Shown: positions 2,554 to 53,802 of the stretch, piece after piece
Layout: each line of letters starts with the position of its first letter
Numbering within the stretch: position 1 is the first letter of the stretch
Source: Syncephalis fuscata S228
Lineage: Eukaryota; Fungi; Zoopagomycota
Length of the DNA stretch: 64,000 nucleotides
Reading direction: 5' to 3'
Assembly (NCBI GenBank): GCA_025786725.1
Contig: JAHLTZ010000049.1
Location: 57,474 to 121,473, forward strand
Program-made: the position numbers and the translations under genes
Notes under the pieces: model-generated
Told to the model about the DNA's origin: nothing
The model's database searches: none
What the model saw: the letters and a program-made list of their open reading frames with translations, nothing else

Positions 2554-2718
2554 CGATACTATGATGGGTAAGGATATAAAAGACATGAGTTTTACAGGTC
2601 ATCTTTCTTAGTTCTTCGCTCTTTTGTTCTTAATTTAAAAGAATAGAGAAAAAGAATTTAAAATAAATCATTAATTGATCAATAATTAGCCATCAATTAT
2701 TTGTTTATTTATTTACTA

Positions 2719-10184: not shown

Positions 10185-11746
10185 ATGTCAACACTGAATA
10201 ACAACACGCTGCCAAAGATATGGCAAATTGTTGAGATAATTCATCATATATCGTCGTTGAGTGAAATAACTACTATTATTGCTTTGGCACGCACTTGCAA
10301 ATTATTGTATAATTCTATTAATTGCAATAGTTTATGGCTTCAACTATACCAGCGTAATTTTCCTCGTGATATCAACATCGATATTGACTGGTTACAATGG
10401 CAGTTAAAACAGGAACAACAAGCAGCACAAGCAGCAGCTGATGCGAAAAATAAAACAGCATCAAAATCTACTTACTTTCAACTATACAGTCAGCGTATGA
10501 ATATGGGTTTAAATTGGCAAAAAAACAAACTAACATCAACAGTCCATTTAAAGTCTTTAATAAAGTTGATGGATCGAATCTACCGATTTGCATGCAAACA
10601 ATTATGGCGAGTTATCCTGGGTGGTTTGCAATATTAACTCGTTGGAATCTTCAGGTCAATTTAGTTAAGCTACTGCCAAAAAATACAACCAAAACATATT
10701 CTCTAGATGTCGATAAAACCAATTTAAAAGCCATAAAAAACATAAAATTTTATCGATATAGACAACAAGTAGATGATGCTGATGATGCTATACGTGTAAT
10801 TTTACATTTGGAATACATTGAAAATCCCATACATACACTTCAAATATGGAACGCAAATAGCTGCCAACTGCTTCGGTCTATCGATTTTGATGGCAAATGG
10901 GACGATAGGATTATAGACGCGTCTTTGTTGCTTTCCAACTTTCAAGACGCTAACATTACTCAGCTACTTTGTAGAGGCCTTTTAAATGCACGACCATATG
11001 AGGCTCAATCCACTAATATTTCAAGATTTAATTATTATGATAATTTTAGAATACATACGGTGAACGGTAGTGAAATGGTTTTTTTGCAATACAATGCTTT
11101 TGGAACGGGAATTCTTTATAGGGTAGCACGTGCATTATTAACTTCTGATGCCAACTTGGTAATGACCAATTATGATGCATCACGAGTAATTGAAGTTATA
11201 TTAAAAATTGAAGTATTTTTTGCTGACATACGCTATGCGAAATTTTATTCAATTGATTATGATCGCGTATTATTTTATTATAGCACTTGCCGAGTCGAAA
11301 GAGATTCGTTTGGCAATACGGAATTCTGGCATCGATACATCAAAGTAATTTCTTTAAGCAAAGGACTTATGCTTGAACGTGATTATCCATCACGTAAAAA
11401 TGAAAGTCTGTTTTTAATCTCAACACATAATCTGGTCGTATTCTACTCGACAACCCGTTTGCCATTAGTCACCATTTCATTACTGGATGGAGAGATTCAG
11501 CGCAGCATCGATATAAGCCTTTTATGCAACAAATTCTATGGCTTTCAGCATCTCATAGATACAAAAATTATTGGCTGCAATTGCGCCACTAACCAATACT
11601 GTATTATTGATGCTGTAACAGGTGATGTGAACGTCTATTTTTTTCCAATATCAGAGGTAGAAGATTATGGATATGCATTTGGTCACATGCTACTGATGAA
11701 TAAGGAAACAACGCTTATTACAAGCTTTGTACCTGAATTGAATTAA
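10185..11746 (+). CDS. F-box-like family protein, copy 1 (intronless; one frameshift at ~10557, probably sequencing error)
   Basis: N-terminal LPKIWQIVEIIHHISSL...IIALARTCKLLYNSINCNSLWLQLYQRNFP resembles an F-box. One added T in tcttt joins ORFs 10146-10637 and 10514-11746 collinearly with copy 2; ends FVPELN*. Confidence 0.7.
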
Positions 11747-11968
11747 ATCTATTAAATAATCATTTTGATATCTGATATCATTCATCATTCACTTCCATGC
11801 TCACTAAAATAAATATTAGCAAATATAATCTTTAATCTCTCAATCACGCTATAATTATTAATATGGCATTGAAACATAGTGACACTGTTCTAGTAAATTA
11901 ATGTAATAAAGCTGGTATCTATTTTCATTGCATCTTGTCCATTCGTCCACATCCCAAACTACAGGCTT

Positions 11969-14900
11969 TTATGTATGTACTCCATTTTGACTAGGACGCG
12001 ATTTTAGAATAAAATTCTATAATAGGAAATAATAATAAGCAAATATTACTTGGACACCATTAACTATTTACCTTGTAAAAAGTACGAAATTGTTTAACAT
12101 CCAACTGCTCAAGTGCTTGGAATATTTCCTAAATCACCATCATTACCGTTAGATAAAGAGGAAGCTATGCTATTACAATAATGAATAAACTCTATAGTAA
12201 ATACCTGTGCTAGCTCTGTGGGACATTGGATAGATGGAAAGTAGACATTCTGCAAGTATTGTAGCAGTTGGTTTCCTTGTTTTTCATGGGCTAGTTTCAA
12301 TGCAGTAGCCAACTCTCCAAACGCCTAATAGACATTAATACACTATTTAATAAAAACAATTCGCTTATTCCTACCAATTGTGTTTGACCATCTGAAAAGT
12401 TAAAGGCTGGATTAATGGGTACTTCAAAACACACGGGAATGATCTCGCTATATATAAACTGATCGAATCCAGCAAGTGTCGTGGCTGAATCTGCTGCACC
12501 GCCCCATGTTGACACCATCTTAGTAAGTAGACTAAATGCCAATTTCTGCGTCTAATTATCATCATTCATATCAGCTCAGTTCGGCCATTCCCCCTTCAGC
12601 GTTACTAACCGGAACATCACCACAGCGCTTAGACTGCTCGATAATAAATCTAAATAGCGTATTTGCATGTCCTTGATTACCTAATAATACATTCTTGCTC
12701 AATACTTATAAACAATATTAATGGAGTAGTTACTTACGAGCTGAAACTAATATACTTTGTAGTTCAAAATTGAACAAGGCAACAAGGAATGACAAAAATG
12801 AACGGCGTACATCATTCTGCAATACAGCTTCATCAGTGCCCGATACTGGCTGTTCAAGTACACTAAACACCCGACTAGCCAACGGTAGGAATAGCTCGTC
12901 CATAACTTCACCAATCATCGACTACACAAATATACGTGTATTTATATATATATATATATATATATGATAAGTATTATAATCATTTAGATCGTACTAATTC
13001 TACCTTGAATTTATGAACAACTAAACTGAGGAAAGCCAAAAATCGGTCACTTCTTTGGGCTCTCCTTCTCCAATAACACTGCCAATAAATGGCGGTAAAT
13101 AAGAAAGTAACTGGGCCCCCAAACAACTAACAAATCGCGAAAAACTATATCGAGCCTATATTTATATATATATATATATCCATTAATACTACATTCAAAT
13201 TGACGTATTCTATTTCATTACGTACCGCTTCACGAATAACCAATACCGTCTCATACGATCTACCACACTCAAAATTAATTCAATGCGCTTTTGAATCCGG
13301 CAACCCATGGCCCAGTAGCCTCATGATCCTTTTCAATAGTAGGAAATCCTATTTATCATTAACATCAACATCAAATATCAAATATCAAATATAGCGTTAC
13401 CTTTAGCTACGGCGCCAACTGCCATAATGAGTCGCGATAAATGAAGCATAGCCACTGGATGATCTAGAGATGTACTGGCATACTGTCTAATCCCTTCAAT
13501 AATAGGTCCCAGTGCCATCTAATTGCATGCCTTATAAATCAACACAATCTTTTACTCGCTTATCTACTTACTTCCAAATAGACCGCTTGCTGATTCGCAG
13601 GAATAGCCTCGGCAGAAATAAGCGATCCAGCTGTCTCAAATAAATAAACTTGGCTGTCAAATGTACTCGCCTCATCTTCTACCAATTCCTCAACTTGAAT
13701 AGTAAACAGATCCTAGTTCCAACCTAGGTTAATATCCTTTAACCAGCACATATATATCCAATCTTGTTGTAGTTACCTGCATGCCTTTAAGTATATCTTC
13801 TGTATACGCTGCAAGCTGTGGCTTCAATGCTTTGGTAAATCGAGCAAATAAATACCAAGTGCGTCGACTAATATGCTTATCTGGATTATGTAGACCACTA
13901 TATATATATATACAAAGTCATGTCAGCAGATGTATAGTATACAGATAGCTTATCCGCTTACCGTTCATCCAAAAAACACGCTAGTACCGGTAATATAGCC
14001 TGTTCTTTAACCTTAAACAAATGAGCATATCTAACGGCACACTCAAAATACGGCAATAATACGGATGCATGAGGATAGCTGTGTACATCTACAGTGTACA
14101 CATTAATCAAGTGTACCAGCATAATCACTATCACTTACTACTCTCAAATACACGTATAACAACTTCACCCAATGGAGTGGGCAATTCTTTGTTAAACAAT
14201 TTCATTTGATCACGGGACATTTCACCCAACCAATAGACTAGTTGCATCACAAGTTCAACCCGCACCCAAGTTGGCTGCCCACCGGCCATCACTTCTCGTA
14301 ACGTTGAAGTAATAAGACCGTGGACATAGGCCGTAAATAGCGGTTCATCAATTGTGGCAATCACTTCAAAGTGTGTTTTTAATGATTGACGCATTTCAAG
14401 AAACGCCACTTCATCTTCATCTTCTGGCGTATTGGTCCATTCAGTATCCAGATCATATTGCATTTTATGAATAATTGTTTCTAACAATGACTGTAAAAAT
14501 GTTTTAATGCCATCGGGTAGACTCGACTGTTTACTCTGTCGTTTAAGCTATTGTATTGTATTATATTATATTATATTATATTACATTATTAGTAAATTCA
14601 TCATTTTTTATTGCCAACTACTTACCATTTGCAGTGTATCATTAACAAATGGGAAAACGCGAATAGACGTGTCATCATATTCACTAGACAGAAATTGTAA
14701 CATAAATGGCCATAAAGCTTCAATTTGAACAAATGACGCCTCTTTTAAATTCGATATCGATGGATCAGACTATAACATAGACATATAAATACATATAAAG
14801 ATATATAAAAGATTATTATAACAGCTAAGTCAATATTACTTACCAATTGATAAACCTCACACAAAGATATACCCGCCGCATTACACAAATAAACAACACG

Positions 14901-27380: not shown

Positions 27381-28975
27381 TTGGCCCTTGCAACAACGTA
27401 TTACCTTTGTAATCGTTTTAATCTATATAGCTCTATTGTAATTGTGTGTGTATTGTTATATTTACACGGTTAATCTACCACTTATTATTATAACAGATAA
27501 GATAACATTTTACTTGGTTGTTTTATTAATGTTAATGCTGTTTAATTAACATTACAATTTATTAATAATTGGTATGATTTGATGGCCAATTGGTTATATT
27601 TAATAATATTTGTGCAATTGAGCTAGACATTCGTTCTAGTAAACAGGAATTGGGCGGTGAATGACGTCAATGGTGAAAATACTCATTATTATAATTTATT
27701 ATTCAGTACATATAGGTATATCCGTTCATCTATAACATTAGCAATCTGCCCTATACTATTATATATCATTATATGCTATATTAAATACATCTTATTTATT
27801 ATACTTCAGCACACTTCGCCCAGCACACTCATTGCGTTATATGCACTATAGCTTTAGCGCCGTTATTTATGCTTTTACATCGTGTATTTATTGTTACCGC
27901 TCTAGTTTAAAGAATGTATTTTAAATGATCAAGTATCACTTTACCCTAAAGTTATTCTAATGCTTTAGCTTTTGGTTTTTGCTTATACTTATTCTAAGGC
28001 TTGGAATACAGTGTGTTATTTAATTAGTATTGATCTGATAATAAACTTATTCCTTACCGGCACTAATTGTTACAGTTTAGCTACATCAAACTGAATAGCT
28101 TGTAAGATGCTATGTATAAATAACATGGACTAAGAACTTATTGTCATTATTGGTATTAAATACAGCTATCATTTCATAGTAAACAAATATTTACATGTAA
28201 TAGTTTTGTAATAGTTGTTGTTAATAATTAGTACTGATGTTTGATATATATTGTTTTGTGATCGTTTATATGCTATATTGACAAACCATATGATGTATTT
28301 CCTAGACACACTATCATAGCAATATAATTGCAATATTAGAATGGTAATAATGCAGAATTATTATCAGTAAATTATGCAATAAATGTATGTTTATATATAA
28401 AGTTGGTATTTATAAAACATATTAACCTACAACGCAATATATGAAATAAAGTAATAGTTTTCAAACTAAATACATAAACTATATTAAATTAAACTAAAGT
28501 ATGTATATAAAACCAAATCATTTTACAAAAAAATGATTACCAGTTTTAAAATATTCAGGCTAGATGCATTCTATTTGCAGTTCGTCATGCTATTCTAGTC
28601 AGTCCAAAGGTCTGTTATCTTTCAAACAACTGCTTCATTCGTTTAGTTCTATTTCCATCATGTCGACTCATAATACAACACACCGCCAAAGATATGGCAA
28701 ATTGTCGAGATATTCATCATATATTGTCGTTGAGTGAAGCCACTGCCATTATTGCTTTGGCACGCACTTGTAAAGTATTGTATAATTCTATTAATCGCAA
28801 TAGTTTATGGCTTCAACTATACCAGCGTGATTTTCCTCGTAATATCAATACCGATATTGACTGGTAAAATGGCAATTAGAACAAAAGCAACAAGTGGCAG
28901 GAACAGTAACTGGCACGGATAACGAAGTAGCAACAAATGTACTTGGTTTCAACTATACAACCAGCGTATGAACAC
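27381..28975 (+). repeat. 1.6-kb segmental duplication, inverted partner at 53484-55079
   Basis: ttggcccttgcaacaacg...atgaacac is the near-identical reverse complement of 53484-55079. The ORF track shows twin peptides MNDVNGENT(H/R)YYN at 27657(+) and 54803(-). Confidence 0.95.
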
Positions 28976-30052
28976 AGATTAAATTGGCAAAAGAACGAGC
29001 CATCATTGACAATTCATCTAGAATTCTATAATATATTTGATGTATTATTTTCTATAAAATCAATTATTGCAAATTATTCTGGCTAGTTTGCAATTGCAAA
29101 ATCAAAAAATATGGTCAGAACGTATTCGTTAGATCTGGGTAGAACCAATTTAATTTTTATAAAAAACATAGCCTTTTATCAGTATCAACACCAAGTAGAT
29201 GCCGCTGATGATGGCACACGTGTAATCCTACTTCTAAACTGTACTGGGACTTTATCAAAAATACTTTAGATATATAACGCAAATAATTGTCAACTGTTGC
29301 AGTTTATTGATTTTGATGGCAAATGGGACGGCAGAATCATAGGTGCATCTGTGCTATCTTCCAAATTTCAAGACTTTGGTATTACTCAACTATTCTATAG
29401 CAATATTTTAAAAACACAAGTATACAAGCTTCAATTCATTAATGTCGCCAACATTGGCGATAAAGAAAAGTTTAAAATACACGTAATGAACGACAATGAA
29501 GTAATTTTTTACAATACACTGGCTTGGGAATGAGACCATTGTATAACACGCGTGTTGTTAACTCCTGATGTCAAATTGTTGACGAGCGATCACAGCACAG
29601 CACAACTAATAGAAATTACAGCGGATTATGTAGAGTTTTCAGTAATGCAATAATAGTTCAAAAGGAATTGCATTTAATTAATCATGATCGCATATTGCTT
29701 TTCTGCAGCTTTTGTCTAGCCGAGAGAACTTTGAGTGACATTATAGCGAATTGGCAACGCTACAGCAGAGTGATTTCTTTAAACAAAAAAGTCATTTTTG
29801 AGCATTGCTATCCAGCAGAAAAACTCGAGGATTTTATTTTAGCTCCAGCACGTAACTTGGCCGTATTTAACTCGAGCATCCGCCACAAATTTGTCATTAT
29901 TTCATTATTGGATGGAGAAATTAAGTGCAACATCGATATAAGTATTACACACAGTACACAGTATCACTTTCTTATAAAGTTGAATTCGGTTACATACTAT
30001 TAATAAGTAAGAAGACAAAGCTCATTACAAGTTTTGTATTTGAATTAACTAA
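28660..30052 (+). pseudogene. F-box-like family copy 3, degenerate
   Basis: Collinear with copy 2 but has multiple indels, in-frame TAG at 29084-29086 in place of the Trp of SYPGWFAI, and lacks the QHLxDTKII...FGHM segment. End coordinate approximate. Confidence 0.8.
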
Positions 30053-30179
30053 ACTTTATAACTATATTTAATAGTATTATTTAGTCTCAGATTTCTCACT
30101 AATATATCAATACATTGGTATCAATTTCACATAATAATGATTACACTCGTTCTCTATTCTACTTTTTTCTATTGCTCTA

Positions 30180-30699: not shown

Positions 30700-30726
30700 T
30701 TGTATTTATTAATTTCTGTAATTAAT

Positions 30727-36700: not shown

Positions 36701-38134
36701 AATTCTATTATATGAATGTATTAATATTCATATACTATACATTTAACAATTAACACTTGCCTAATTAAAGCTTTAACAAAAATATGGATAAATGATGTAA
36801 TATCATAATTAGAACTGCAATCCAATAGAATAACTGGAACAAATTCACTATAATATGTATATTAGTTAATGTACGCATTAATTAGACGGTATATTTGACT
36901 TACGGTACAGAAAGCAATGATGTTGCTACTTTATCATTAAATGCATCTGGTGCGGTTTCTTGACAGCTTGTCAAGTGCAGTAAGCAAAGTGTTGCTTCCA
37001 TTTGTGATTCCTTTGTACTTGCACTCATAGGATTGACAATGCTGAGTATCAATTCAGTAAGCGCGGTGGCAGAAAAAGTGGCACGAGATGCCAATTGACT
37101 CAAAAGTATCAATGCCACAACCTATTTCATTTATATAAATATAACATATATATGTATATATAGTACTTCATTAATACTTACTCGAGTTTGATCATTAGAT
37201 GGTTGCAATAAACCATATGAGATAGTAGGCAACAGCAATGTAATAAGATTGTTATTGACTTGTTGGACTCGCTTTAACGTTAATACAGCAGTAGCAATAT
37301 AAAAGTTACACTGTGTTTTATGCGCCAATCCACGTTTAGCAGCCGATACCATCTAATAATAGATATAAGCAGACTATTAGTATAGCACTATAGCACGTAC
37401 TTGATCACCAATAATACGTAAAAGTGATAATTGGCGTGTACACTGTTCTACAAGTAGAGGACGTGCCAATGGACGAATAGGACGGCGGAGTGATCGAATA
37501 AACGACCAAATATCGTCATCTCTAAAGTCACTCGTTATTAGTATAGGATATGAAATAAAAACATACTATTACCTGAATTTCATTAATGAAGCCAATTTAG
37601 CAAATTGAGGTGTCTCATGGAATGGCAGTATACCCGCAAGCAATTCAGTGGTATTGAATTCATTGACACTATATAAACCATTAGTTATGAGTCTATAAAG
37701 TAGAATAATAGCTGTACCGGAAACGACGTAGAAGCCATTCAATGCATTTACCCGCCGATCGAGTTAGGAAATACTGCGATATACATTGTGCGAAAAGCGC
37801 AATACTTGTATTAAGCTGTGCATTCTCTTCTCGCGTCTATAATTACAATGGTATGAATAGGCTATATAATAGCTAGTTATTGCAATCAAATTACCTTTAG
37901 TGTACGATCGTATCCTTTCATAGCTGCACTGAATAGCGTATTACGGAATGGCGTGAATCGTTGCTGGTCAAGTTGCTCAAGCTCTGCTAGACCGGCACAA
38001 CCAAGGTCGTAAATAGAATCTAGATCATAATCGGCTGCTTGTTTAGCATCAAAGAGAAATGAAGTGGCAAACTTGTCACTGCCACGCTTCTCTACCGTAG
38101 CAATACGTGCTAATTGTGATGCTAACGAAGCCAT
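30727..38134 (-). CDS. UTP10: U3 snoRNA-associated protein 10 (HEATR1/BAP28), many exons
   Basis: MASLASQLARI...SFLFDAKQAADYDLDSIY; CIEWLLRRF; LPFHETPQF; NIMPVFTFMGASVLRQDDNYSF; FVDAFFHIPRHRRLRLF; KLNETMFKPIF; LLPETIPFLAELME; LGEPLQKYFD*. Confidence 0.96.
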
Positions 38135-39004
38135 AGTGTACTGTTGTTGCTGTTGTTGCGTGTGCGTATGTGATATATCGTTTGGACGTGCGTACCAGCA
38201 AACAACAAGGGCAAAAGAACAAAGTGTAGCAATGAAAAAAAGATAAAATAAAAAATAAAAATATAGATTTTATTATTATGATTCAAGTCTCCCTCTGATT
38301 ATTAACTAATTAATTAACTATGATGATTCATCACTTGATAAAGATTGAAAGTAATGAAAGACATTCAATAATTATATATAGTTAATAAATGGTGTAATAT
38401 AGATAAAGCACCAATATTATTAGAATGGTAGTGAATGTAATTATTTGAGTGTAGCTAGCTATGATATATTAACATTTTCAAAAAAGTTATATTTATTAAC
38501 TGTATAGTAATGAGAGCGGAGTGTGAATGTTAAACGCTAATTGCACCACAAGTCGGTACATCATAGAACATATTAATAGTCAAATGGTAAATGTATTAAG
38601 AATAAAAGTCGCTGAACACCAAAGAGTACTGTTAATCTGTTTATTAGTAAGACAATGACAGCATTAATAAATAGTATTTTGAATGAGTTACTAGCTAAGG
38701 ATTGCCATTAAATAACGCTTCCAGGTCAAACAAGTTCGAAAAGAAAAAGCGCTGGTTTACTATTTTATAGAATAAATAAATAAAATCTATTCACCTTAGC
38801 AAGTCTGAGCGCATTACGTTTATATACACTTATGATTCAATTGGCTTTATTTTATTAAACAATACCGACTTTGCTTGGCTAGCGTACTTGAATTACACGC
38901 TAGACTATACAACCATAACGTAACCCGTAAGTTTGTATTATAGAAGTATTTTCTTTTCTAACTGTAACCTATTTAAAGGTGTTTACCATTGTACAGCCAA
39001 CAAA

Positions 39005-41968
39005 ATGAAGGTTGTTGCACTCATTAGGTATTACTTCGTCTAGAAACGCTTATATTAGTGCCAATAACTATAATTCTGATATATGTGTACTCTTTTATAG
39101 CGGTGGCAAGGATAGTTGCTTTAATATGATGCACTGTCGGGCCAATGGCCATGACATTATTGCTCTGGCTAACTTGTATCCACCAAAAGACTCCGGTAAA
39201 GGTAGTGTACAACAAGGGCAACACGATATAAAAGTTAAATGAATTGTATTTACATCCATAATATGTATAATAATTAGATGAATTGGATAGTTTTGTGTAT
39301 CAAACAGTGGGCCACGATGCCATCCACTGGTATGCCGAGTGTATGGATCTGCCATTAATACGTAGAGAAATACACGGAACACCAGAACGGCAAACACTTG
39401 ACTACGATGTAACAATCAATGACGAGACAGAGGATCTCTATGCACTTCTATCTGAGGTTAAGGTATAATAAAATAAAATAGCCAACACTTGATGCTAATG
39501 TTAAATAATAGACACGTTATCCAGATGTTCAAGGTGTATCGGTCGGGGCAATTCTTTCAAACTATCAGCGCATCCGTGTTGAACATGTGTAAGTTAATGA
39601 GCAGTATAATCAACTAGCCATTTTGTATAACCGATAAACTCGTAGATGTCAGCGATTAGGTCTAACTTCACTTGCCTATCTTTGGCAACAAGATCAGACT
39701 GAATTGCTTAACTCGATGGTAAAGAACTCATTATGCTCGGTATTAATTAAAGTAGCAGCTATGGGTAATTACATTGAATAACAATGATAACGTGCTATCT
39801 AAATAAATATGATATAGGTTTAAATCAACGCCATTTGGGCAAGTCACTTCAAGAAATGCAACCAACACTATTAAAATTAGTAAGTGTTGTAACGATAATT
39901 TAATAGTGCTTTATTAAATAATGCCATTGATATAGCATAATCAATTTGGTTTACACGTTTGCGGAGAAGGTGGGGAGTATGAAACATTTACGTTAGATTG
40001 TCCACTTTTTGTTAAACGAATTGTTATGTACGTAGATATAACCATGTATTAATTATTGCATAAAATGGCTAATGGTGGCATGTATAGTAAGACGTCAGAA
40101 GTAGTGGTACATTCAGATGATGCATTTGCACCAGTGGCCTATTTAAAGTTTAAAAAGCTTGACGTAGAAATTAAATCAGATTCTATACCTTTATTAATAA
40201 CACCGCCTGATCTACAGTCATTACTGAAGGAAATGCCATTATTGCCATTGCCCGTCAGTGTAGGTCAATTAAGCAACAACACTAACAATCTTATTAATAA
40301 CTGATGGATAATTGAAGATACAACGGCCAACTTGGAATACTACAACATCTATTACAGAGGGTGAAAATGGTAATTTTACTTTAATAAATTTACAATATGA
40401 CTTATTGTGAAATAGTAGCCATACCACACGTCACAAAGCATACGAATGGCCTTATAGCTATTACGGGTATTGCTATGCCAAAAGAAACACTAGAGGAAGA
40501 AACAGAGGCTTGCATGCTTCAACTACAAGGTAAGTACCTATTATTTACGCTATATTCTCTAGTTAATTATCGATAGAAATACTGCAATCTCATTCACGCA
40601 GTTGGCAACATTTATTAGCCATGCATTTATTTGTTAAAGATATGTCAGATTTTGCACGTATTAATACAGTGTATCAACGCTTTTTTACTATAAATCCGCC
40701 AACTCGGTAATACATCATAACAATCGATACTGCTATCGTTACCTTATCGATAACTAACTTATAGTATGTTTTAGTGTATGTGTTGAAGTAAACCTACCTT
40801 TAAATTACCGTCTACGTATTGATTGTATTGTCGGTGATACAATTAAGCAAAATTGCCAGGAACGAGAGACGCTACATGTACAAGGCTTATCTTATTGGGC
40901 ACCAGCCAATATTGGACCGTACTCACAATGTGTCAAGGTATACTGTATTATGAAATAGACACCAACTGATGACTAACAATCGATATGCTTAGAGTAAAGG
41001 TCAAATGTGGATTGCCGGTCAAATTGGTTTAATACCTGCGACATTGCAATTGCCGCAACTGTCTACAGCGGTTGAACAGTTCCGTGCCGAAACTATGCTG
41101 TCACTGCGGCATGTATCGCGTATTGCCCAAGCTGTTAATATATCATTTGAAAAACAAGTTATTATGGGTATTGGCTATGTTACTGACGATCAATGGATTC
41201 TACCAGCACGTACAGCCTGGCGACAACATTTCAACAAGGTTAGTCACTGGATGATTACAAAATATATTCTAACTTAGCATTGTTATTGTTATGTAATAGG
41301 AAAAAGATCAAATAAATAGTGTAATACCTAATGCTTTATTTGTTGTTGTGCCTGCTTTACCGCGTGGTGCGTGTATTGAATGGCAAACTGCATGTTCAAC
41401 AATGCCAATTGAAAATGATGGTGATGAAATGGTTGCAAATACATGTCGTAAGTAGTATTTTTAATCGATCATTGACTATGTAGTCTAATACTTTACCAAA
41501 TTATTATGTAGAAATAACAGCTAATGACAATAGTAGCTACGGTACTATGATTGGATCTGTTGGTTCTGTTATAGCAACCATTAGTAATTGTTCAGCAACT
41601 CTCGATACTAAAGAGGCTATTGATTCAGTTATTAGTGATCTAATTAAACTTATTGATACAGCGCTTGATCGTTTAGAACAATCTTGGCAAAATACATTGA
41701 TATTACGTCTATTCTATTATCAAGGTATGCCTCATTTGTTATTAGAACAAGGTAAGAGTAAATAGCTACACTGTAAATTCATGTCAGCAACTTATTATTA
41801 TTATCATTGTTAGCACTAAATCAATGTTTACACCGTCGTGGTATTTCCACTGATCGTCATAAACTTGCCGTGGCATTTGTGCCCGTAATAGCACTTGCAC
41901 TTGGTGACGCCACCGATAGTATAAGTGATAACACTATACTAGGCGCATGTTTACAATTGTGTTCGTAA
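39005..41968 (+). CDS. DPH6: Diphthine--ammonia ligase with C-terminal RidA/YjgF-like domains, many exons
   Basis: MKVVALI|SGGKDSCFNM; DSFVYQTVGH; GAILSNYQRIRVE; CGEGGEYETFTLDCPLF; LHVQGLSYWAPANIGPYSQ; AGQIGLIP; VVPALPRGACIEWQ. Confidence 0.95.
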
Positions 41969-42052
41969 TTCAAATAAATAAAACACCATGGGCGCATTTT
42001 ATTAAATAGCTAGTTAATTAATTATGAGTATATCTTGTAATTTCTTAATAAA

Positions 42053-43289
42053 TTAAGTATACTTAAGTACAGTACTGATTCCGTAATGGTCTAATAGTTA
42101 TGATATAGTTAATATACGATTAGTTAAGCTTAGTTACCAGTAACTTACCCGATAATTGAGTGACCGGCATTCCTTCCAAATGCTCCTTAGCGATATAGAA
42201 TGGCTCAACTACCGTACTCTTTGGATCAGTTACATTAGGCTCCACTGAGGGCGGATCTTCACCACGACGCATTACAAGAATGTAATCCAGTCGTTGACGC
42301 CAGCCAAGTGCGTCGCTAGTAGTAAGTGTCGTTTCAATTGGAATAGGCTGACCACGCGCATCCAACTCCACCTGTCCATTGACATCACGTTTAACATCAC
42401 CAAATGTCTCGGGGTGCTTGCCCAAATGCTCAAACAACAAATCCTGTATAACAAATTTGTTCTCAGATTTATATACATTGCCGTCTTGGCGGGAACCTGG
42501 TACCAACGATGGATGAATGCCCTTACCGCTGAGCACACCCAGTGTAGCACGATATTCATCGCTGGATCCGCCCTTTTCTGCGGCTGCCGCATCATCCGGA
42601 CGACCATTAACGTTCAAGTCGCCTGCAAATATAATAAGGTCGTTGGTCGACTCATCCTGTAACTGGGCATCGATGAACCGGCGTGCTGCATATAGCTGTT
42701 TTAAGCGAATCTGCACAGCGCCATCTGACATGGCATAGCTACGTGTATACGACGACTGTAAATGCGTCGAAAATACTTGAAGGTATCGATTGCCAGCCAC
42801 ACGTAGCTTGGCATAGACAACGCCCTTCGCAGCCAGCCAATCGCTATCCGTGCCACGGTCGTAGGTCAATGAAGCATGGCGAATAATTGGGAACCGACTG
42901 ATAATCACCACACCACCATCAATACGCAGCGTAATAGCGCATTGTCGTGGCGACGATACCGAATAATGATAGCCTTTTTCGTGAGCTGCTTTAATTAGTT
43001 CAGAGCGTCGATTTGATCCAAAACCAAATAGTTCCTGGAACACAATAACGTCAAACCGATCGAGTTCATGGTCGATAAAATAGCGCAGTCGTTCGGATTT
43101 GTAGTCGTTGCCGTTTGAGTTAATGCCAGGTGGGCGCATATAAAAGTTATACTGAGCCAATCGAACTGTATAGTCAGCAAACGGATCCTTGGCAGGGCTA
43201 TCAGACGTAACGGTGACGCCAGACGTCGTAAGAGCAATGTCGGTTGCCACTTCACTGGCCACAACTTGATTATCGGCTTCGGCTGGCAT
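42053..43289 (-). CDS. Endonuclease/exonuclease/phosphatase-family enzyme, sphingomyelinase/IPC-phospholipase C-like, 2 exons
   Basis: YNFYMRPP...DVIVFQELF...IDGGVVIISRFPI...LAAKG...STHLQS...FAGDLN...RLDYI...QLS|DHYGI: all EEP catalytic motifs present. Start placed at MPAEADN; the ORF extends upstream to 43664. Confidence 0.85.
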
Positions 43290-43825
43290 TATACAGAAAA
43301 AATCGGACCAATAAAGCTTTAATGGGATATTTGTTGGATGAGCAGTAGTGGTTAAGCGAAGAAGCAAGGAGAAAGGACTGCTGTCAATAGGATGATTAGA
43401 CCAAGTAAATACGGTAGCTAATAGACAAACAAGCGCAAATAGAAGTAAAGCAGCGGGATAGCCAGTACAGTTACAGCGGAAAAAAGAACAAAGTGCTGCT
43501 GGATAATAAACGGTAGAGTTGAAAGTGTCGTTGTCAAGCTTAGAGTATTTTGAAAGAGGTGCTGTTGTGGTATTTGTTGTTGTTGTGTCCGTTGCTGTTG
43601 GTGGCTCGGGCACCTCAGTGGTTGGCTGGTTCAGCGGTAAAGCAGAAGGTGACTGTGGGAGCATGGGTGAAGAAGAGAAAACAACAAGAATAGATATTGA
43701 GTGACACGCGGATACTGTAAATCCCGCTTTTACTCTTTTCCCACTCTCTTGTTACGTGACTAGCTAGCTAGCTTGCTAACTATTGTTGATATCCTCGTTT
43801 AACAACTTGATCAATACTAACCACT

Positions 43826-44344
43826 ATGTCGTTCGCTTCTACTACTACTACTACTACTACTGTCACCACCACTGCCACGTCAACTTCTTCAAAAGTGGCC
43901 AATCCTCAGTATGTGCCACAGCCATATCAGGTGACCGGCTATCGATCTTTTGCGGATTTCTATCCATTTTATTTGGGCGAACATAATCATGCTACAAATC
44001 GTCGTTTACACTTGCTAGGTAAGCTATTTATCACAGCACTATAACTGCCTATCTAACTAACTCCAACGGATAGGCACGACTACAACGCTGACTCTCTTGG
44101 CTAGCATTCTAGTAACTGGTCGGTCGTTTTTCTATGCTCCATTGGCATTTGTGCCCGGCTATTTCTGTGCATGGGTAGGCCATTTTCTATTTGGTAAGTT
44201 TATTATGCATAGATGTTTATCTATAATAATGTATATAATATACTAGAGAAAAATAAGCCTGCTACATTCAAACATCCTTTTTACTCATTAATGGGTGATT
44301 TGCGTCTTTTTTACGAAGTCGTGACCAGCCAACGTGACATGTAG
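43826..44344 (+). CDS. DUF962 / Mpo1-like small membrane protein, 3 exons
   Basis: YRSFADFYPFYLGEH...NRRLHLL|GT...GYFCAWVGHFLF|EKNKPATFKHPFYSLMGD. Confidence 0.9.
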
Positions 44345-44574
44345 ACCACGATGTTACACGGCGTCTAAATTTGGTGTTTAATGGATACTATTTGACACAT
44401 AGTATTTATTGGAATCTAGCTAACATACTACTATGCTAATTAATGCTAGCTTTTACGTTCACTTGCATAACAATTGATGGCTATGAAAGTGAATATTTTA
44501 TACATAATAAAAAACAGTCGTCAATCTTAAATAACCTCTTTTTTATTAACCAATTACATTATGTGTATATGCAC

Positions 44575-47500
44575 TATAGCGTTAACGTTGTTACTTATAC
44601 AGTTCACCTTGTATATTCATATCATTTTATATAGATACATATGCAATTAAATACGATTTACCTGCAATTGTTGTCTGTTGTTTTAGCTTTATTGTCTATA
44701 AGATTCGACTTGTTTAGTTTATTCCGTTATTAAGCTACCCTGTAGCACGTTATTTAATTCCTTAAATTGTATATGCTATCATGTATATTTTTTATTAACA
44801 GCTTATTGGCAGTTTAATATGATTTAAATTAAAATACTATAATTTATAATATTTGTGCAATTTAACTGCATATTCTTTCTACTCAGTATGGAACTCGATG
44901 ATAAATTATATTAATAGTCGCATTATTATCATTGGCTTGCTATCATTACTATCCTATATGAATCTATCGAGTGTCAATAATACCATACCTGTAAATTCTT
45001 ACAGTACTGTGTTATTAATAGTTATATCGCCACTGTCCGCAGCTTTTCCTAAACCTTAATCATGATTTATTTTTTCTAAACTTGCTATTATTTACATACT
45101 TCATCATATGACATAAATACTATCAAATTTATGGTTGATAAAAATGAAATAATCCTGCAATAATTAGCTATAAGAAGACAAGCTAGCGCATGCTTTAATA
45201 AAGCAATAAATTCGCATATGCTTATATTATTTGTTTTATTCGTGTTTACGGCTCAATAAATTGAATGAAGCAAGAGTTATTAATAATAACGCCAGAGACA
45301 ATTGGACAACAGCTGTGAATAGCTTTGTTAAAGTCCTAATTTGCAACTTATCATTGATGCAAAATATCCATAAACTTTTGTGAGATTGCATTATTTGTTA
45401 TTTTTAATACACAAATCGACGTAAAATCCAGTATTTTTATTTTTAATAGTTATGATTGCAGCAAAAATATCCCGAATGTGCATAAAGTGCTACTTTTGAA
45501 TTTAAATATAAAACCATTGTGCCAATGCTATGACAGCAAGCGACATATTAAAATATGATTATGGCGTAATTAGGTGGTAAAAGGCAATGGCAAAGCAATA
45601 GTACTAATTTAATTAATAAATAGTTGCTGGCAATACATACGGCTTTACGTATAATGAAGCGACTGCATGATATTTTGTACAAGTATACTTGTGACATATA
45701 TATATGGCTGTTGATAAACTATATTGTAGTCTTATAGTGTGGCAATGCAATTGGCATGATACCACGCCAACAAATGCATAAAAACAACGGTTTTCTGTCG
45801 ACCATGGCCTATATACGTAAAAAATAGCATAATGATCGCAGGATTCGAGTTCTCCATGCCTAGATATACCGTCTGGTATGAATTATAAAACAATGATTTT
45901 GTGCAAAAAAATAGTCACAAATGTAATCTACGTTATTTTAATACGTTCAGTAAGCGTTGTTAATAATACATATAACTTTACATACAATGAAGCAAACTGT
46001 GTGATATTTTGCACAAATATATTTATGCCATATAGATAGCTATTGACAAAATATAGTGCACTTGTATTGCGTATTGATTCAATGGCTATGTCGATACGCT
46101 AATAAATGTACAAACACAACAGTTTTATACCGCTTATGGCCTATAGATTTAAAATACAACAAAATCATTACCGAATTCGAGTTTTTCATGTTTGGTTGTA
46201 CCGTTTGGTATAAAATATAGAACAAAATATTTTTAAAAAAATTAGTCGAAAATGCACTTACGTAAATATTAGTTAACGGAGATTAAGCTATTGTATATCT
46301 ATAGCATAAACTGCAACGGACATCAGTTTTATATATATTAACTTGCTGTTATGTTTGTGGCACTGTATAATGCTTTGGATTTACTTTAGACCAGTCTTAG
46401 TTCTTAGTGTTAATGCATTAAATCATAAAGCTTTAATTGCTTTGCTAATTATTTAACGTAAACTGCATTTTCGACTAATTTTTTTAAAAATATTTTGTTC
46501 TATATTTTATACCAAACGGTACAACCAAACATGAAAAACTCGAATTCGGTAATGATTTTGTTGTATTTTAAATCTATAGGCCATAAGCGGTATAAAACTG
46601 TTGTGTTTGTACATTTATTAGCGTATCGACATAGCCATTGAATCAATACGCAATACAAGTGCACTATATTTTGTCAATAGCTATCTATATGGCATAAATA
46701 TATTTGTGCAAAATATCACACAGTTTGCTTCATTGTATGTAAAGTTATATGTATTATTAACAACGCTTACTGAACGTATTAAAATAACGTAGATTACATT
46801 TGTGACTATTTTTTTGCACAAAATCATTGTTTTATAATTCATACCAGACGGTATATCTAGGCATGGAGAACTCGAATCCTGCGATCATTATGCTATTTTT
46901 TACGTATATAGGCCATGGTCGACAGAAAACCGTTGTTTTTATGCATTTGTTGGCGTGGTATCATGCCAATTGCATTGCCACACTATAAGACTACAATATA
47001 GTTTATCAACAGCCATATATATATGTCACAAGTATACTTGTACAAAATATCATGCAGTCGCTTCATTATACGTAAAGCCGTATGTATTGCCAGCAACTAT
47101 TTATTAATTAAATTAGTACTATTGCTTTGCCATTGCCTTTTACCACCTAATTACGCCATAATCATATTTTAATATGTCGCTTGCTGTCATAGCATTGGCA
47201 CAATGGTTTTATATTTAAATTCAAAAGTAGCACTTTATGCACATTCGGGATATTTTTGCTGCAATCATAACTATTAAAAATAAAAATACTGGATTTTACG
47301 TCGATTTTGTGTATTAAAAATAACAAATAATGCAATCTCACAAAAGTTTATGGATATTTTGCATCAATGATAAGTTGCAAATTAGGACTTTAACAAAGCT
47401 ATTCACAGCTGTTGTCCAATTGTCTCTGGCGTTATTATTAATAACTCTTGCTTCATTCAATTTATTGAGCCGTAAACACGAATAAAACAAATAATATAAG

Positions 47501-48145
47501 CATATGCGAATTTATTGCTTTATTAAAGCATGCGCTAGCTTGTCTTCTTATAGCTAATTATTGCAGGATTATTTCATTTTTATCAACCATAAATTTGATA
47601 GTATTTATGTCATATGATGAAGTATGTAAATAATAGCAAGTTTAGAAAAAATAAATCACGATTAAGGTTTAGGAAAAGCTGCGGACAGTGGCGATATAAC
47701 TATTAATAACACAGTACTGTAAGAATTTACAGGTATGGTATTATTGACACTCGATAGATTCATATAGGATAGTAATGATAGCAAGCCAATGATAATAATG
47801 CGACTATTAATATAATTTATCATCAGTTCCATACTGAGTAGAAAGAATATGCAGTTAAATTGCACAAATATTATAAATTATAGTATTTTAATTAAATCAT
47901 ATTAAACTGCCAATAAGCTGTTAATAAAAAATATACATGATAGCATATACAATTTAAGGAATTAAATAACGTGCTACAGGGTAGCTTAATAAGCGGAATA
48001 AACTAAACAAGTCGAATCTTATAGACAATAAAGCTAAAACAACAGACAACAATTGCAGGTAAATCGTATTTAATTGCATATGTATCTATATAAAATGATA
48101 TGAATATACAAGGTGAACTGTATAAGTAACGACGTTAACGCTATA
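44575..48145. mobile_element. Giant foldback palindrome, 3571 bp: arms 44575-46256 and 46464-48145, spacer 46257-46463; non-coding
   Basis: Begins tatagcgttaacgttgttacttatacagttcacc and ends ggtgaactgtataagtaacgacgttaacgctata. The arms are reverse complements with only a few substitutions or 1-bp indels seen. The palindrome is directly observed; mobility is inferred from the second copy. Confidence 0.85.
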
Positions 48146-48350
48146 TGTACATTGCTTAATTTTTACATAATACTTGTTATTATATTATACAATAAATGCT
48201 ATTTTAATTAAATATTAAACTGTACACTTGTGAACTAATACTTCTTTTTCTAATGTTAACAACTGTTTTTTCATACTCGAATTACTTTCAAGCTATTACG
48301 TTATTTTTACTAGTCAATATCGTAACAACAGCAATAAAGATTTATTACAT

Positions 48351-48363
48351 TGACGTCACGTGA
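48351..48363. promoter_or_regulatory. Overlapping CRE (TGACGTCA) and E-box (TCACGTGA) upstream of ETF-alpha
   Basis: tgacgtcacgtga about 150 nt before the ATG; motif match only. Confidence 0.45.
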
Positions 48364-48509
48364 TCTTCGGATAGTTGTACGTCATCTTACCGAAACTATT
48401 CCGAGTTCGTCCATAAGATCGCGCACGCGTAGCTTTTCACCCGACAATACACCGCTCTTTCTACTTACTGTGTCTCCTTTTCTTCTACTGCACCTGTTTA
48501 AACATCAAT

Positions 48510-49810
48510 ATGCTGACTATTACCACTCGCCAAGCAGGCCTTCGTGCATCTGCCTTGTTGGCACGACAGCGCTTTCTTAATCAGGTAGGATTAACTTTGG
48601 GCATACCACTGCCATCAATATTAATGCAATTATACCGGCAACACGCTATCTATCGCTCAATAGGCAGGCTTTATGACGTTCCGTGGCTATGCCTCGGCCA
48701 GTGATGTATCATCATTGGTGGTTATTGAACATAAAAACGACAAAATTGATCCATCAAGCTTAAATGCATTATCAGCGGCAGCCAAACTAGGCGGCACTGT
48801 GCATGCACTTGTGGCGGGCAGTGCGTCGGATGCTGTGGCGGATCAAGTTGCAAAACTAAAGCCAGTTAGCAAAGTTCTAGTGGCCTCCGATGCCGTTTAC
48901 GACCACGGCCTGCCTGAGAATAGCGCATCATTGATTGCTGCTGCACAGAAATCTGGCAATTATTCACATATTGTCGCTGCCCATAACGCATTTGGCAAAA
49001 ATATATTGCCTCGTGCAGCAGCTCTACTAGATGTGGCTCAAGTTTCGGACATCACGGGTATTACAAGTGCTGATACATTTACGCAATCTGTCTATTCAGG
49101 TAATTTATAACAAATGGCCATTTATTTCAACTACAATAAATCTAATAAACAATAGGTAATTTGATTGCTACGGTCAAGGCAAATGATCCCGTCAAAGTCT
49201 TTACTGTTCGCACCTCGGCCTTCCCGCCTACTGAAGCCCAAGATACGGCAGCGGCCAAAGAAGCAGCTCCTGAAGCAGAAAAAACAGGCAAGTTTATTTA
49301 CAACTATCAACAAATTCATATATATATATAATGCTATTTAATTAGACGCCACAAAATGGGTCAAAGAAAACATTATCAAAAACGATCGACCAGACTTAGG
49401 CACTGCGCGTGTTGTTGTCAGCGGTGGCCGTGGATTAAAGAATGGCGAAAACTTTAAAATACTATACGCTTTAGCTGATAAGATGGGCGGTGCAGGTATA
49501 GTACAAATTACACTAACAATTACTAGATAGTGCTAACATTAACGATATTAGTTGGTGCATCACGTGTTGCGGTCGATGAAGGCTACGTTGACAACAGTTT
49601 GCAAATTGGCCAAACAGGCAAGACAGTAGCACCAGATATTTACATTGCTGTGGGTATTTCTGGTGTAATTCAACACGTGGCCGGTATGAAAGATAGTAAG
49701 GCAATTGTAGCCATCAACTCAGATGGTGAGGCTCCCATTTTCGAGTTGGCCGATTACGGCATTGTAGGCGATTATTTAAGATTGTACCAGAATTGACTGA
49801 AAAAATCTAA
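48510..49810 (+). CDS. ETFA: Electron transfer flavoprotein alpha subunit, mitochondrial, 5 exons; 1-bp deletion near 49772
   Basis: Arg-rich presequence; [22 protein letters not shown]; [18 protein letters not shown]; VGASR...[11 protein letters not shown]...[15 protein letters not shown]. Restoring one T gives [14 protein letters not shown]. Confidence 0.96.
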
Positions 49811-49836
49811 ATATTGCATTGCTTTTATTAAACTTT

Positions 49837-50682
49837 TTAAAAAAACTTTACACCGTCCTCGCCAGAACCAGCAGAAAATATTTGAGCCTTATTTTGTTTT
49901 ACCAAAACATTAAGTGCTTTTCTTAGCATTCGTTCATCCAATTGATAAAAATCTAGTTATCTTGCAATTAATATTGGTAAATGGTAGTGCATGGATACTT
50001 GCCTTGTCCATCAACTGTAGCGCTATTTGATACTTCGTGAAGTGTAAGTACAGAGCCACGCTGTCCTGTCTCGGCAATCTATTATATGATTATTACATTG
50101 CCATTGTATTAATACAATTAATTAAACGATACAAAAGCTACTATTTGCCAATTACCCAGTTGTAAATCAATTGACCCCAAGCATCTGGTCGTCGCCAATA
50201 AATAAATACTTCAGTTTTGGCTGTGTCAATCCATGCTACATCGCCTGAATAGTAAATACAGTTATAAATGATTATATCTAATGTCTATGCACCATTCACT
50301 TACCTTTATTTACAGAAATCTCTATAATCTCTATTAGTAAATCGCGTGACAGCTGTCCTATAGTGTATAGTATTAGTATTAGTATTATTAATTGGCATTA
50401 ACAAATTAATGACTTGCGTTGTATGGCTGAGTTAACACACAATTCACTTGAGAGTAAATCGTCCAAACGTACACAAGTTTGTCGAGTGTGTTGTGCATAG
50501 GCTAGCAACAAGTCAGACCATATTTCAAGTTGACGTGTACGTGTTGCATCTGTAGGCTGTCGCCTGTGTCAGACACACGCAGTCTATTAGTATATTCTTT
50601 GTAGATACACTGTGACCTACGTATAAAAGGGTGGAAACTGATGAATGGCTGGAAAGTCAAATCTTTCCGCTGATTTACTCAT
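49837..50682 (-). CDS. VPS25: ESCRT-II subunit Vps25, 6 exons (absent from ORF track)
   Basis: MSKSAERFDFPAIHQFPPFYT|RQPTDATRTRQLEIWSDLLL...FIYWRRPDAWGQLIYNW...GSVLTLHE...KALNVLVKQNKAQIF...GVKFF*. Confidence 0.92.
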
Positions 50683-51005
50683 TGTTCTTAATAATACAAA
50701 ACTATTTTATATTGGCAAGGTAATAGGTGTTGACAACTCAGTATATATAGACCAGTATTTGTTGTTTTTTGTTATTTACTGGTTTTTGTACTCACGGTTA
50801 CAAGTACTGGTTATAAAATTGCCCCAAAAAAATGATAGTGAAACTGAGACTCGGAAGTGAGAAAGAGGTAGAGCCGAGCCTCAGTTTCACTGCAACTTAA
50901 TAGAATGTAGCTATTAAAAGCACCAGTTAATTAATATTAATTAATACAGACCACGTTTTACTTCTCTACTGATAATTTGTATTAATCCCAGTATTCACTT
51001 TTGTC

Positions 51006-51787
51006 ATGGCCAAAGCAACTGCAGGAAAAGCAGGAGGAGTCTCTGACCGTAACAGGTCAAAGAGAGGCGTCAGTAAAGCAACTCAAGGCTATTTACTGTT
51101 CTATAATTTTGCTTCATGCGCTGCATGGGCTTTCATACTAGTGCGTACCGTAAATCACTTTGCTGCCAATGGTTTGACAGCCGGTCTGCCAACGCTCTAC
51201 GCGAATATCGGTGACGACCTACGCTGGATACAAACGGCAGCTGCTCTTGAGATTATTCATAGTGCATTGGGCTTTGTGCGGTCACCACTGGGCACAACAC
51301 TAACTCAAGTGGCTAGTCGGCTCCTACTTGTCTGGGGCATTTGTGGCTTGTTCGATGTGCCCGAGGTACGTACTCATTGGGCATTCACCACAATGACCAT
51401 TGCTTGGAGTATTACAGAAGTGGTGCGCTATTTGTTTTACGCGCTTGGTCTGCTTGAAGTGTCATCCGACTTGCTGCTCTGGTGTCGGTAAGTACCACGC
51501 AATCTGCTGGCTATGATAGCTTCTTTGTCATTAATAATGAATTGATGTTAAATACATTTAGGTATACGTTCTTTTTAGTGCTTTATCCAATGGGAGCCGG
51601 CTCTGAAGCAATGCTTATCTACCAGTCGTTGTCGGCAGCAGATGCGCTCTATCCTAATTATGGCATTATTCTTCGTGGCATGCTTGCCATCTATCCACCT
51701 GGTCTAGGTGTTATGTATACACATATGCTGGGTCAACGCAAGCGCTATCTAGCAAGTCGTTCAAGTAGCCAGAAAAAGAGCCAATAA
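51006..51787 (+). CDS. PHS1: Very-long-chain 3-hydroxyacyl-CoA dehydratase (PTPLA/HACD), 2 exons
   Basis: YLLFYN; IQTAAALEIIHSALGFVRS; QVASR; AWSITEVVRYLFY; WCR|YTFFLVLYPMGAGSE; MYTHMLGQRKRYL. Confidence 0.95.
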
Positions 51788-52235
51788 TAAATAATGACTG
51801 GCTATTGGTCAATCTATTGACTAATACAACTAAAATATGTTTTTTATTTCGCTTTATTTAATTTAAATACTATTGGTTATGTTTAGGATATGTTAATGTT
51901 GTTTTCAATTATTCGATGAGTTTAAATTGCGCATTTTTACGTAAATGGATATATGAACTCTATGTGATAATAGTAATTTTAAATAATAGTTTATTTATGC
52001 TATTTTGTTAGTGCTATCGTTATTTGCTGATAGTATGTTATATGATATACTAAACTTTCTTATAAAGACTTTATACTTTTATCTGTTCACTTCTATTGAT
52101 TACCTTGCTAATAGTATGTTCTATAATATACCGACATTTTGAACAAATTAAATACTATTCATTATTTGCACGATTTAATTATAACAATAATTACTAGATT
52201 TATTATTGCCGTAATGATAACCTATAGATGATTAT

Positions 52236-53802
52236 TTAAGAGATATAAATCAATTTAGGTACAAAGCTTATAATAAGCGTTGTTTTCTTGCTCAGCAATA
52301 TCATGTGTCCAAATGTAACCTTACAGCACTTTACTTCTGATATTGGAAACGAATAGATCTTTACATCGCCTGTTATGACATCGATAATGCAGTATTGGTT
52401 AGTGGTATAATTATAGCTGATAAGTTTTGTATCAATAATATGCTGAAACTAATTAAATCTGTCGCATGAAATGCCTTTATCGATGCGGCGCTGAATCTGC
52501 CCACCCAATAATGAATGATGACTAATTCTAAATTGGATTCTGAGTAGAATACAGCCAAGTTACATATTGGAATTGAAACCACACTTCTAAAGCTATCCGA
52601 TAAATAATAGTATTCGAAAATGACTCCTTTGCTTAACGAGATCACTCTAATGTAGAGTTGGCCACTTATCCCATTACTACTCGACGCGTTTTTAAATACA
52701 GAAAATTTGTAGTAAAATAACATACAATCGCAATCAATTGAACAAAATTCAAACAGTTTCATGATTGCTTCTTCAGGTAACTCCAAACAATCCAAAATAG
52801 TTTCGATCATTTGTGGCGTGCCGTCATCGATCATTAACAGTTGGCATTAAAAGTTAACAACACACACACTATCCTGCATAAATGTTTCTTTTATAAATAC
52901 TGTATTGCAGAATGACCACTTCGTTGCTGCTCACGTAAGTATTCTAAATCCAGTATAATGACAGGCAGCTGAAGCAACAATGTGTTGAGTCGTATATACT
53001 TGTGCATTTAAAAGGTTGGTATAGAGTAATTGAGCGATGCCAGAGTTTGAAATCTTAAAAAACAGCATATAGTTGTCTATAATTCTATCATTCCATTTTT
53101 GATCAATATCAATAGAATGCAGCAGTTGGCAGTTATCTGTGCTCCATACTTGAAGTACGGTAAATGATTTCTTACTGTACTTTAAATGCAAAATTACACG
53201 CATGCCTTTATCAGTGTTGTCTACTTGCAGTTGATATTGATAAAACTTTTTTATCCTTATTAAATTGGTTTTATTCAAATTTAGTGAATATGCTTTGGCT
53301 GTGTTTGTTGGCAATAGCTTAATCAAATCAATCGGCCAACTTTGGTTATTTGCTATTGCAAGTCAGTCATGATAACTTGTAATAATTATGTCACTATAAT
53401 AATTATCTTCTTTTCTTATGGATATATCAAACGTTTTTAGATGAATTGCCAATGATGGCTTGTTTTTTTGCCAATTTAATATCGTGTTCATACGCTGGTT
53501 GTATAGTTGAAACCAAGTACATTTGTTGCTACTTCGTTATCTGTGCCAGTTACTGTTCCTGCCACTTGTTGCTTTTGTTCTAATTGCCATTCTAACCAGT
53601 CAATATCGGTATTGATATTACGAGGAAAATCACGCTGGTATAGTTGAAGCCATAAGCTATTGCGATTAATAGAATTATACAATACTTTACAAGTGCGTGC
53701 CAAAGCAATAATGGCAGTGGCTTCACTCAACGACAATATATGATGAATTATCTCGACAATTTGCCATATCTTTGGCGGTGTGTTGTTATTATGAGTCGAC
53801 AT
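52236..53802 (-). pseudogene. F-box-like family copy 4, degenerate
   Basis: F-box region near-identical to copies 2 and 3. Several frameshifts plus in-frame TGA at 53363-53365 in place of the Trp of SYPGWFAI. Ends SFVPKLIYIS*. Confidence 0.75.

Follow-up and report, generated by a model that had tools for sequence, protein, structure and literature searches.

The DNA analysed here is a 64,000-nucleotide stretch of the Syncephalis fuscata genome (contig C316, positions 57474–121473; hereafter, the window). The species is confirmed by ORFs of this genome that match NCBI proteins of S. fuscata exactly. It contains four copies of an F-box-like gene. Very probably, these belong to a genome-wide family of about 43 intronless loci encoding FBXW-like substrate receptors of Skp1–cullin–F-box (SCF) ubiquitin ligases. 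On this reading the family arises by local duplication, its members die frequently, and the near-identity of some 5′ ends is due to ectopic gene conversion.

A tblastn search, using the 548-amino acid (aa) product of 24982–26628, identified exactly four family loci in the window. They begin at 10185(+), 24982(+), 28660(+) and 53802(−), the positions named by an earlier reading of the sequence (hereafter, the original prediction). No other family loci were found in the window. The four loci are as follows.

Copy 1, 10185–11746, plus strand: a near-intact pseudogene, or a candidate for sequencing error.
Copy 2, 24982–26628, plus strand: an intact gene encoding 548 aa, and the sole uninterrupted open reading frame (ORF) of the four. 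The product has an F-box-like region (residues 17–57), a helical linker (to about residue 146) and a predicted eight-bladed β-propeller (about residues 147–545).
Copy 3, 28660–30003, plus strand: a pseudogene that has lost its 3′ end.
Copy 4, 52251–53802, minus strand: a pseudogene. The 5′ ORF (53488–53898) is open and the remainder is broken by stops and frameshifts.

Database protein P0001 has the same sequence as the product of copy 2. In copy 1 a frameshift, due to a single +5-nucleotide (nt) indel near 10560–10570, separates two ORFs (10146–10637 and 10514–11746). In copy 3, three 1-nt deletions fall within the first 230 coding nt, inside the supposedly constant part of the gene. This copy also has at least seven stops and its last ~75 codons are gone. 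Copy 4 contains four or more stops and is broken into at least three ORF pieces. We considered repeat-induced point (RIP)-like mutation as the cause of pseudogenisation. This was rejected because dinucleotide indices are equal in intact and broken copies. The observation on which the original prediction was built stands in part. The loci, the 5′/3′ mosaic and the lack of introns hold, and copies 1 and 2 contain the listed anchor motifs (GWFAI, LQIWN, FGHM and others). Intact family members are single ORFs, whereas the Skp1 gene of the same genome has two short introns in ~640 nt. What did not hold was the intactness of the copies, and their placement in AT-rich islands. Gene bodies have a GC content of 0.34–0.35, compared to a window mean of 0.355; the intergenic flanks alone are AT-rich (GC content 0.25–0.30).

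The original prediction described a leader and ~70 codons, almost identical in copies 2–4, followed by strongly diverged sequence. We compared the four copies using sliding-window identity and a two-breakpoint maximum χ2 test, with 100 permutations per pair. Copy 2 was 95.5% identical to copies 3 and 4 between positions 24855 and 25209. Elsewhere, identity was 63–66% and the change was abrupt. Copies 3 and 4 were 98–99% identical from far upstream to the equivalent of copy 2 position 25433, and ~62% identical thereafter. For copies 1 and 2, identity was 89.5% across 24994–25213 and 67% elsewhere. With each pair, none of the 100 permutations was as extreme as the observed pattern. Consistent with this picture, synonymous divergence (dS) across codons 1–75 was 0.023 for copies 2 and 4, and 0.31 for copies 2 and 1. 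In the propeller, dS for copies 2 and 1 was 0.70. The shared segments are listed below.

24855–25209, plus strand: putative conversion tract on the copy 2 side, comprising ~125 nt of upstream leader and about the first 76 codons.
27366–28975, plus strand: copy 3 arm of a 1.6-kb inverted repeat (98–99% identity), comprising 1.3 kb of upstream DNA and the first ~315 nt of the gene.
53484–55094, minus strand: copy 4 arm of the inverted repeat, a mirror of the copy 3 arm.

The upstream 1.3 kb of the inverted repeat is non-coding and includes a dispersed repeat of ~340 nt. The latter is found at ~27548–27895, with its mirror in 54565–54912. It resembles a miniature inverted-repeat transposable element or short interspersed nuclear element, and at least 40 copies (~70–75% identity) are spread over many contigs of the genome. 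The two 1.6-kb arms flank a 24.5-kb gene-bearing block (28976–53483). They are a possible substrate for inversion of this block by non-allelic recombination.

The original prediction also proposed birth-and-death evolution, and a genome-wide census of the family. We searched the entire S. fuscata genome (29.4 Mb, 371 contigs). In total, 108 high-scoring segment pairs were merged into 43 family loci. Eight loci have a start-to-end ORF (515–585 codons) and one further locus has an open frame of 578 codons. The rest, ~80% of loci, are broken, as expected for birth-and-death evolution. The non-redundant family size is ~40, as two near-identical pairs involving small contigs may be haplotigs. The pairs are L041 (C85, a 19-kb contig) with L051 (C279), and L035 (C35) with L062 (C30, a 24.6-kb contig). 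Each is 97–99% identical from end to end; segmental duplication in the very recent past is the other possibility. Many loci are in tandem clusters, on contigs C35, C90, C190, C2, C13, C279, C339, C327 and C257. The spacing in tandem arrays is 1.8–2.2 kb, which favours duplication at the DNA level. Judged by the identity profile, which fades gradually upstream and abruptly past the stop codon, retroposition was set aside as the mode of copying. One locus, L057 (C344:16630–18277), overlaps the NCBI model KAI9590991.1 (3149 aa, ‘golgi-body localization protein’). The model includes a family stretch, matching profile positions 139–253, probably because an adjoining family pseudogene was fused into it.

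We also used a family profile to search 1.84 billion representative sequences. Matches covering the propeller were almost only from S. fuscata. Thus, all nine checked matches of this type with a source name were S. fuscata proteins. One environmental ENA contig (P0028) also matched the propeller. From these sequence comparisons, the expansion appears to be specific to the S. fuscata lineage.

The 5′ homogeneity is not general across the family. Averaged over all 903 locus pairs, the F-box part was 68% identical and the propeller 58%. Such a difference is expected if purifying selection is stronger on the F-box part. The ratio of non-synonymous to synonymous change (ω) is ~0.2 for the F-box compared to 0.3–0.5 for the propeller, with a dS of ~1 in both parts (pairwise Nei–Gojobori estimates; propeller range 0.29–0.53). 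Against a dS of ~1, the value of 0.023 for copies 2 and 4 does indicate homogenisation of their 5′ part, as originally supposed.

Significant mosaics were found in four groups: copies 2, 3 and 4 of C316, L046 versus L048–50 on C13, L052 and L053 on C279, and L055 and L056 on C339. Identity is 95.5–99.6% in the tracts and 58–67% outside. The partners are always on one contig, 4–65 kb apart, and the tracts take in non-coding upstream DNA. The position at which tracts end varies, from the equivalent of copy 2 position 25181 to 25433. In the 5′ tree L055 and L056 are sisters, and so are L052 and L053, yet the propeller tree places the members of each pair in separate clades. Nearly all tract partners are pseudogenes; the sole intact gene among them is copy 2. 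As controls, intact genes adjacent in tandem on C35, C90 and C190 were compared, and these have no tract. Because the tract spans pseudogenes and non-coding DNA, selection cannot keep it identical, which argues for recent ectopic gene conversion. A recent duplication of the whole gene, followed by fast 3′ divergence, could also leave a near-identical 5′ end. For copies 3 and 4 we rejected this explanation, since uniform divergence would be expected of two pseudogenes. Taken together, the sequence comparisons identify the near-identical 5′ part as the likely footprint of recent ectopic conversion, between same-contig paralogues, rather than a conserved module.

We next consider the encoded protein. 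Profile comparisons point to an F-box that is weak but real, in agreement with the original prediction. For copy 2, Pfam family PF12937 (F-box-like) matched residues 17–57 with a score of 25.8 bits (cut-off 24.3), and no further Pfam family matched at E ≤ 1. The copy 4 5′ ORF scored 29.2 bits, and copy 1 scored 22.0 bits, which is below the cut-off. Weaker matches to the family profile were confined to positions 16–125. These were to F-box proteins of S. pseudoplumigaleata and Thamnocephalis sphaerospora, plus JGI/IMG and Logan proteins. Some profile-matched proteins have clear F-boxes (P0047, 40.1 bits; P0058, 31.3 bits) and so provide transitive support for the family F-box. Comparisons with such F-box proteins, using hhalign, gave probabilities of 96.7% and 95.7%. 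The N-terminal alignment has a common F-box and then a linker motif, W..Y..R...NW(Q/R).(N/G), which we take to resemble the linker of FBXW proteins. In an AlphaFold2 model, residues 1–150 have a mean predicted local distance difference test (pLDDT) score of 75. Helices are predicted at residues 11–25, 28–45 and 48–58, the position of the F-box. Skp1, the expected partner, is encoded at three loci: L031 (its positions 1007–1650; contig C268), L032 and L033. Two of these share a Pfam score of 94.9 bits (C-terminal exon). The copy 2 linker has one further feature.

25231–25408, plus strand: tandem duplication in the linker, specific to copy 2, with a period of 117 nt and the motif W-F-Q-R-[FY] ... 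N-W-Q.

In a divergent paralogue, L024 (its positions 1447–3255; at 96.9 kb of C13), a similar sequence is inserted at the place where copy 2 has this duplication.

The C-terminal β-propeller foreseen by the original prediction was also recovered. In the AlphaFold2 model, residues 165–545 form 32 β-strands (pLDDT 75–88) arranged as eight blades. Comparison with known structures, using VIA-align, gave Z-scores of 19–16.6 to eight-bladed propellers and Foldseek concurred. The scores include 18.6 for FBXW8 (7z8b_F), 17.4 for Fbw7 (7t1y_B) and 16.6 for Cdc4 (1nex_B). These alignments cover 316–335 residues, with a root mean square deviation of 4.2–4.3, and begin in the linker at model residues 128–135. 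At the sequence level, neither WD40 (PF00400) nor any other propeller Pfam family was matched, at E ≤ 1 for copy 2 and the copy 1 ORF or at E ≤ 0.01 for 11 members. Similarly, the family profile matched no propeller among PDB sequences, and gave only chance matches to antibody light chains. The ESM Atlas, searched by shape, returned generic PQQ/BamB-type propellers. Searched by features, it returned DCAF17, the Pof12 propeller and FBXW12, with scores of 0.81–0.87. As these are below 0.9 they are leads only, and Pfam confirms neither Pof12 nor DCAF17. The model is most simply described as FBXW-like (F-box, helical linker and eight-bladed propeller) with a propeller that appears too diverged to score as WD40.

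Expression of copy 2 is suggested by a public sequencing run (X1; 18 million letters of contigs), the type of which was guessed as RNA. Two contigs, at 25037–25792 and 25767–26617, match copy 2 and so cover only the ORF. Upstream, ~900 nt are free of X1 contigs, as are 800 nt downstream, a pattern that resembles a transcriptome. The depth on copy 2 was 16–43, compared to ~1000 on a neighbouring gene. A further contig joins position 25117 to 25226 with different sequence between, and is probably the transcript of a paralogue.

To locate variability in the propeller, we read the blades from DSSP strands (not coordinates) with 1+3 closure; successive loops lie on opposite faces of the propeller. 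The non-synonymous rate of the propeller is about twice that of the F-box and the excess is in the loops of one face. The entropy of the D–A and B–C loops (canonical register) was 2.07 bits, compared to 1.35 bits for the other set (Mann–Whitney P = 2e-8, with sites non-independent). In the variable loops the median pairwise ω was 0.66; the remaining loops gave 0.28, strands 0.35 and the F-box 0.21. Whatever the blade register, variability in the model is concentrated on one face. Such a bias is compatible with a binding surface that varies, under relaxed or diversifying constraint, with positive selection unproven. Values of ω above 1 were found for none of 21 pairs in the most variable loop class, and in no structural class, at a dS of ~1 and hence with low power.

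These data bear on the notion of an adaptive repertoire, to which the original prediction inclined. It supposes that a Skp1-binding adaptor is selectively homogenised while the propeller diversifies, either for non-self recognition or to handle proteins of the host (Mucorales), viruses or transposons. A lineage-specific expansion in a mycoparasite would suit this idea, as would the one variable face (ω of 0.66 versus 0.28) and the probable transcription of intact copy 2. Comparable patterns in nematodes and plants are reportedly read in this way (Thomas 2006 Genome Res). However, ~80% of loci are dead, the homogenised tract takes in non-coding DNA and pseudogenes, intact tandem genes are not homogenised and no structural class reaches an ω of 1. 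Furthermore, the copy 2 translation, read without a predictor, has no N-terminal sequence resembling a secretion signal. We consider this explanation unlikely. With three pseudogenes among the four copies in the window, a functional four-gene repertoire with a maintained constant adaptor finds no support. The same applies to a diversifying recognition domain, given that no structural class of the propeller has an ω as high as 1. Roles in host interaction or non-self defence are still speculation. Going further, the variable face might be a true recognition surface, under diversification, in an innate immune-like SCF repertoire directed against host proteins, mycoviruses or mobile elements. Promoter-proximal conversion would then keep the Skp1-docking end and its regulation uniform, with the pseudogenes as a sequence reservoir. 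We think this scenario quite improbable.

At the other extreme, the family could be a largely functionless surplus, generated by duplication-prone and repeat-rich regions and shaped by mutation and recombination only. The open copies would then also be decaying. The high share of pseudogenes is in keeping with this, and so are the propeller ω of 0.3–0.5, the repeat-rich and AT-rich flanks, and the near-identical pseudogene triplet L048–50. Even so, eight open ORFs persist at a dS of ~1, with an ω of ~0.2 for the F-box and 0.35 for strands, which indicates purifying selection on intact members. In addition, the S. pseudoplumigaleata homologue aligns over most of its length. Drift of this kind is very improbable as a full account.

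Our favoured explanation remains an FBXW-like receptor family, subject to local duplication, frequent death and ectopic conversion. Each gene likely encodes an SCF ubiquitin ligase substrate receptor. The N-terminal F-box would dock on Skp1, the helical linker terminates in the W..Y..R...NW(Q/R).(N/G) motif, and the eight-bladed propeller would hold the substrate. The 5′ bias of the tracts fits the conversion polarity of yeast genetics, with promoter-proximal breaks and with tracts terminated by sequence divergence. By analogy, a break near the promoter of one copy may be repaired from a paralogue. The resulting tract would run through the upstream DNA and the F-box region, already the best-conserved part of the gene. 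It would halt where the propeller is too diverged for heteroduplex formation. Conversion of this type would strike live and dead copies alike.

Several observations count against this explanation. The F-box score is marginal, with E ≤ 0.01 in only three of 11 members. In a Foldseek search with the N-terminal model there was no match at E ≤ 0.001. The best F-box row was Skp2 (1fs2_A) with an E-value of 8.5, and β-TrCP (6m92_A) was also among the weak rows. Prediction of a complex between copy 2 residues 1–80 and the last Skp1 exon only (57 aa, L031:1477–1647) gave a score of 0.23 (mark 0.34), which is no verdict in either direction. Which propeller face is variable depends on the blade register taken from DSSP strands. 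The record of run X1 does not give its type as RNA, so it only suggests expression. Finally, the role assigned to breaks at promoters is drawn from conversion polarity in yeast and is not an observation made here.

The window also has a near-perfect palindrome of 3.57 kb (44575–48145). Its arms (44575–46259 and 46461–48145) are 98–100% complementary and separated by a 201-nt spacer. Partial copies, with 98–99% identity, are found 25.0 kb away at 20436–21732. The palindrome looks like a foldback-type element.

Our analysis adds an early-diverging mycoparasite of the Zoopagomycota to the organisms with large F-box receptor families of fast turnover. It also defines an unannotated propeller family, all members of which are now called ‘hypothetical protein’. 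The mosaics cleanly illustrate, in a natural setting, how conversion tracts begin upstream of a gene and end where paralogues become too different. Because pseudogenes have the same pattern, a constant 5′ part with a variable 3′ part can arise without selection. For annotation, the consequence is that most family loci here are pseudogenes, some of which are fused or patched by gene models. In the literature collection searched, no paper links Syncephalis with F-box proteins.

The closest structural parallels are Fbw7, Cdc4 and FBXW8. With these, the family has in common the domain order (F-box, helical linker, eight-bladed propeller; Z-scores of 16.6–18.6) and a W..Y..R...NW.(G/N)-type linker, the likeness of which to FBXW proteins is presumed. 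Unlike them, the family has no WD40 Pfam match (E ≤ 1) and no PDB sequence match. It is also intronless, with ~43 loci in one species that are mostly pseudogenes, and orthology to a named FBXW gene is not shown. The closest relatives in sequence are RKP26293.1 of S. pseudoplumigaleata, and RKP08617.1 and RKP07463.1 of T. sphaerospora. These are of similar length (572–593 aa) and have a homologous F-box and linker. For the S. pseudoplumigaleata protein, the hhalign alignment extends over 438 columns and includes the propeller. Conversely, identity is only 19–24%, there is no evidence of comparable expansion in these species, and hhalign detected no propeller homology for RKP08617.1, the one Thamnocephalis protein compared.

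In evolutionary terms, the best comparison is with nematode FBA2, plant FBA and FBK, and Parachlamydiaceae F-box expansions. Large species-specific F-box families are reportedly common to such lineages, and are said to evolve by birth-and-death with many pseudogenes (Thomas 2006; Xu 2009; Hua 2011). The S. fuscata family shares with them its size and species specificity, a conserved F-box, a substrate domain that changes faster, and birth-and-death with many pseudogenes. Lineage-specific F-box expansions with birth-and-death are described in two reports (PMC4209131, PMC7829749). By contrast, the substrate domain in S. fuscata is a propeller without a Pfam family, and the species that carries it belongs to the Zoopagomycota. 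Ectopic conversion is restricted to the 5′ part and positive selection is not demonstrated. Thus, this is a new and unannotated family within a known phenomenon, the lineage-specific expansion of F-box receptors by birth-and-death.

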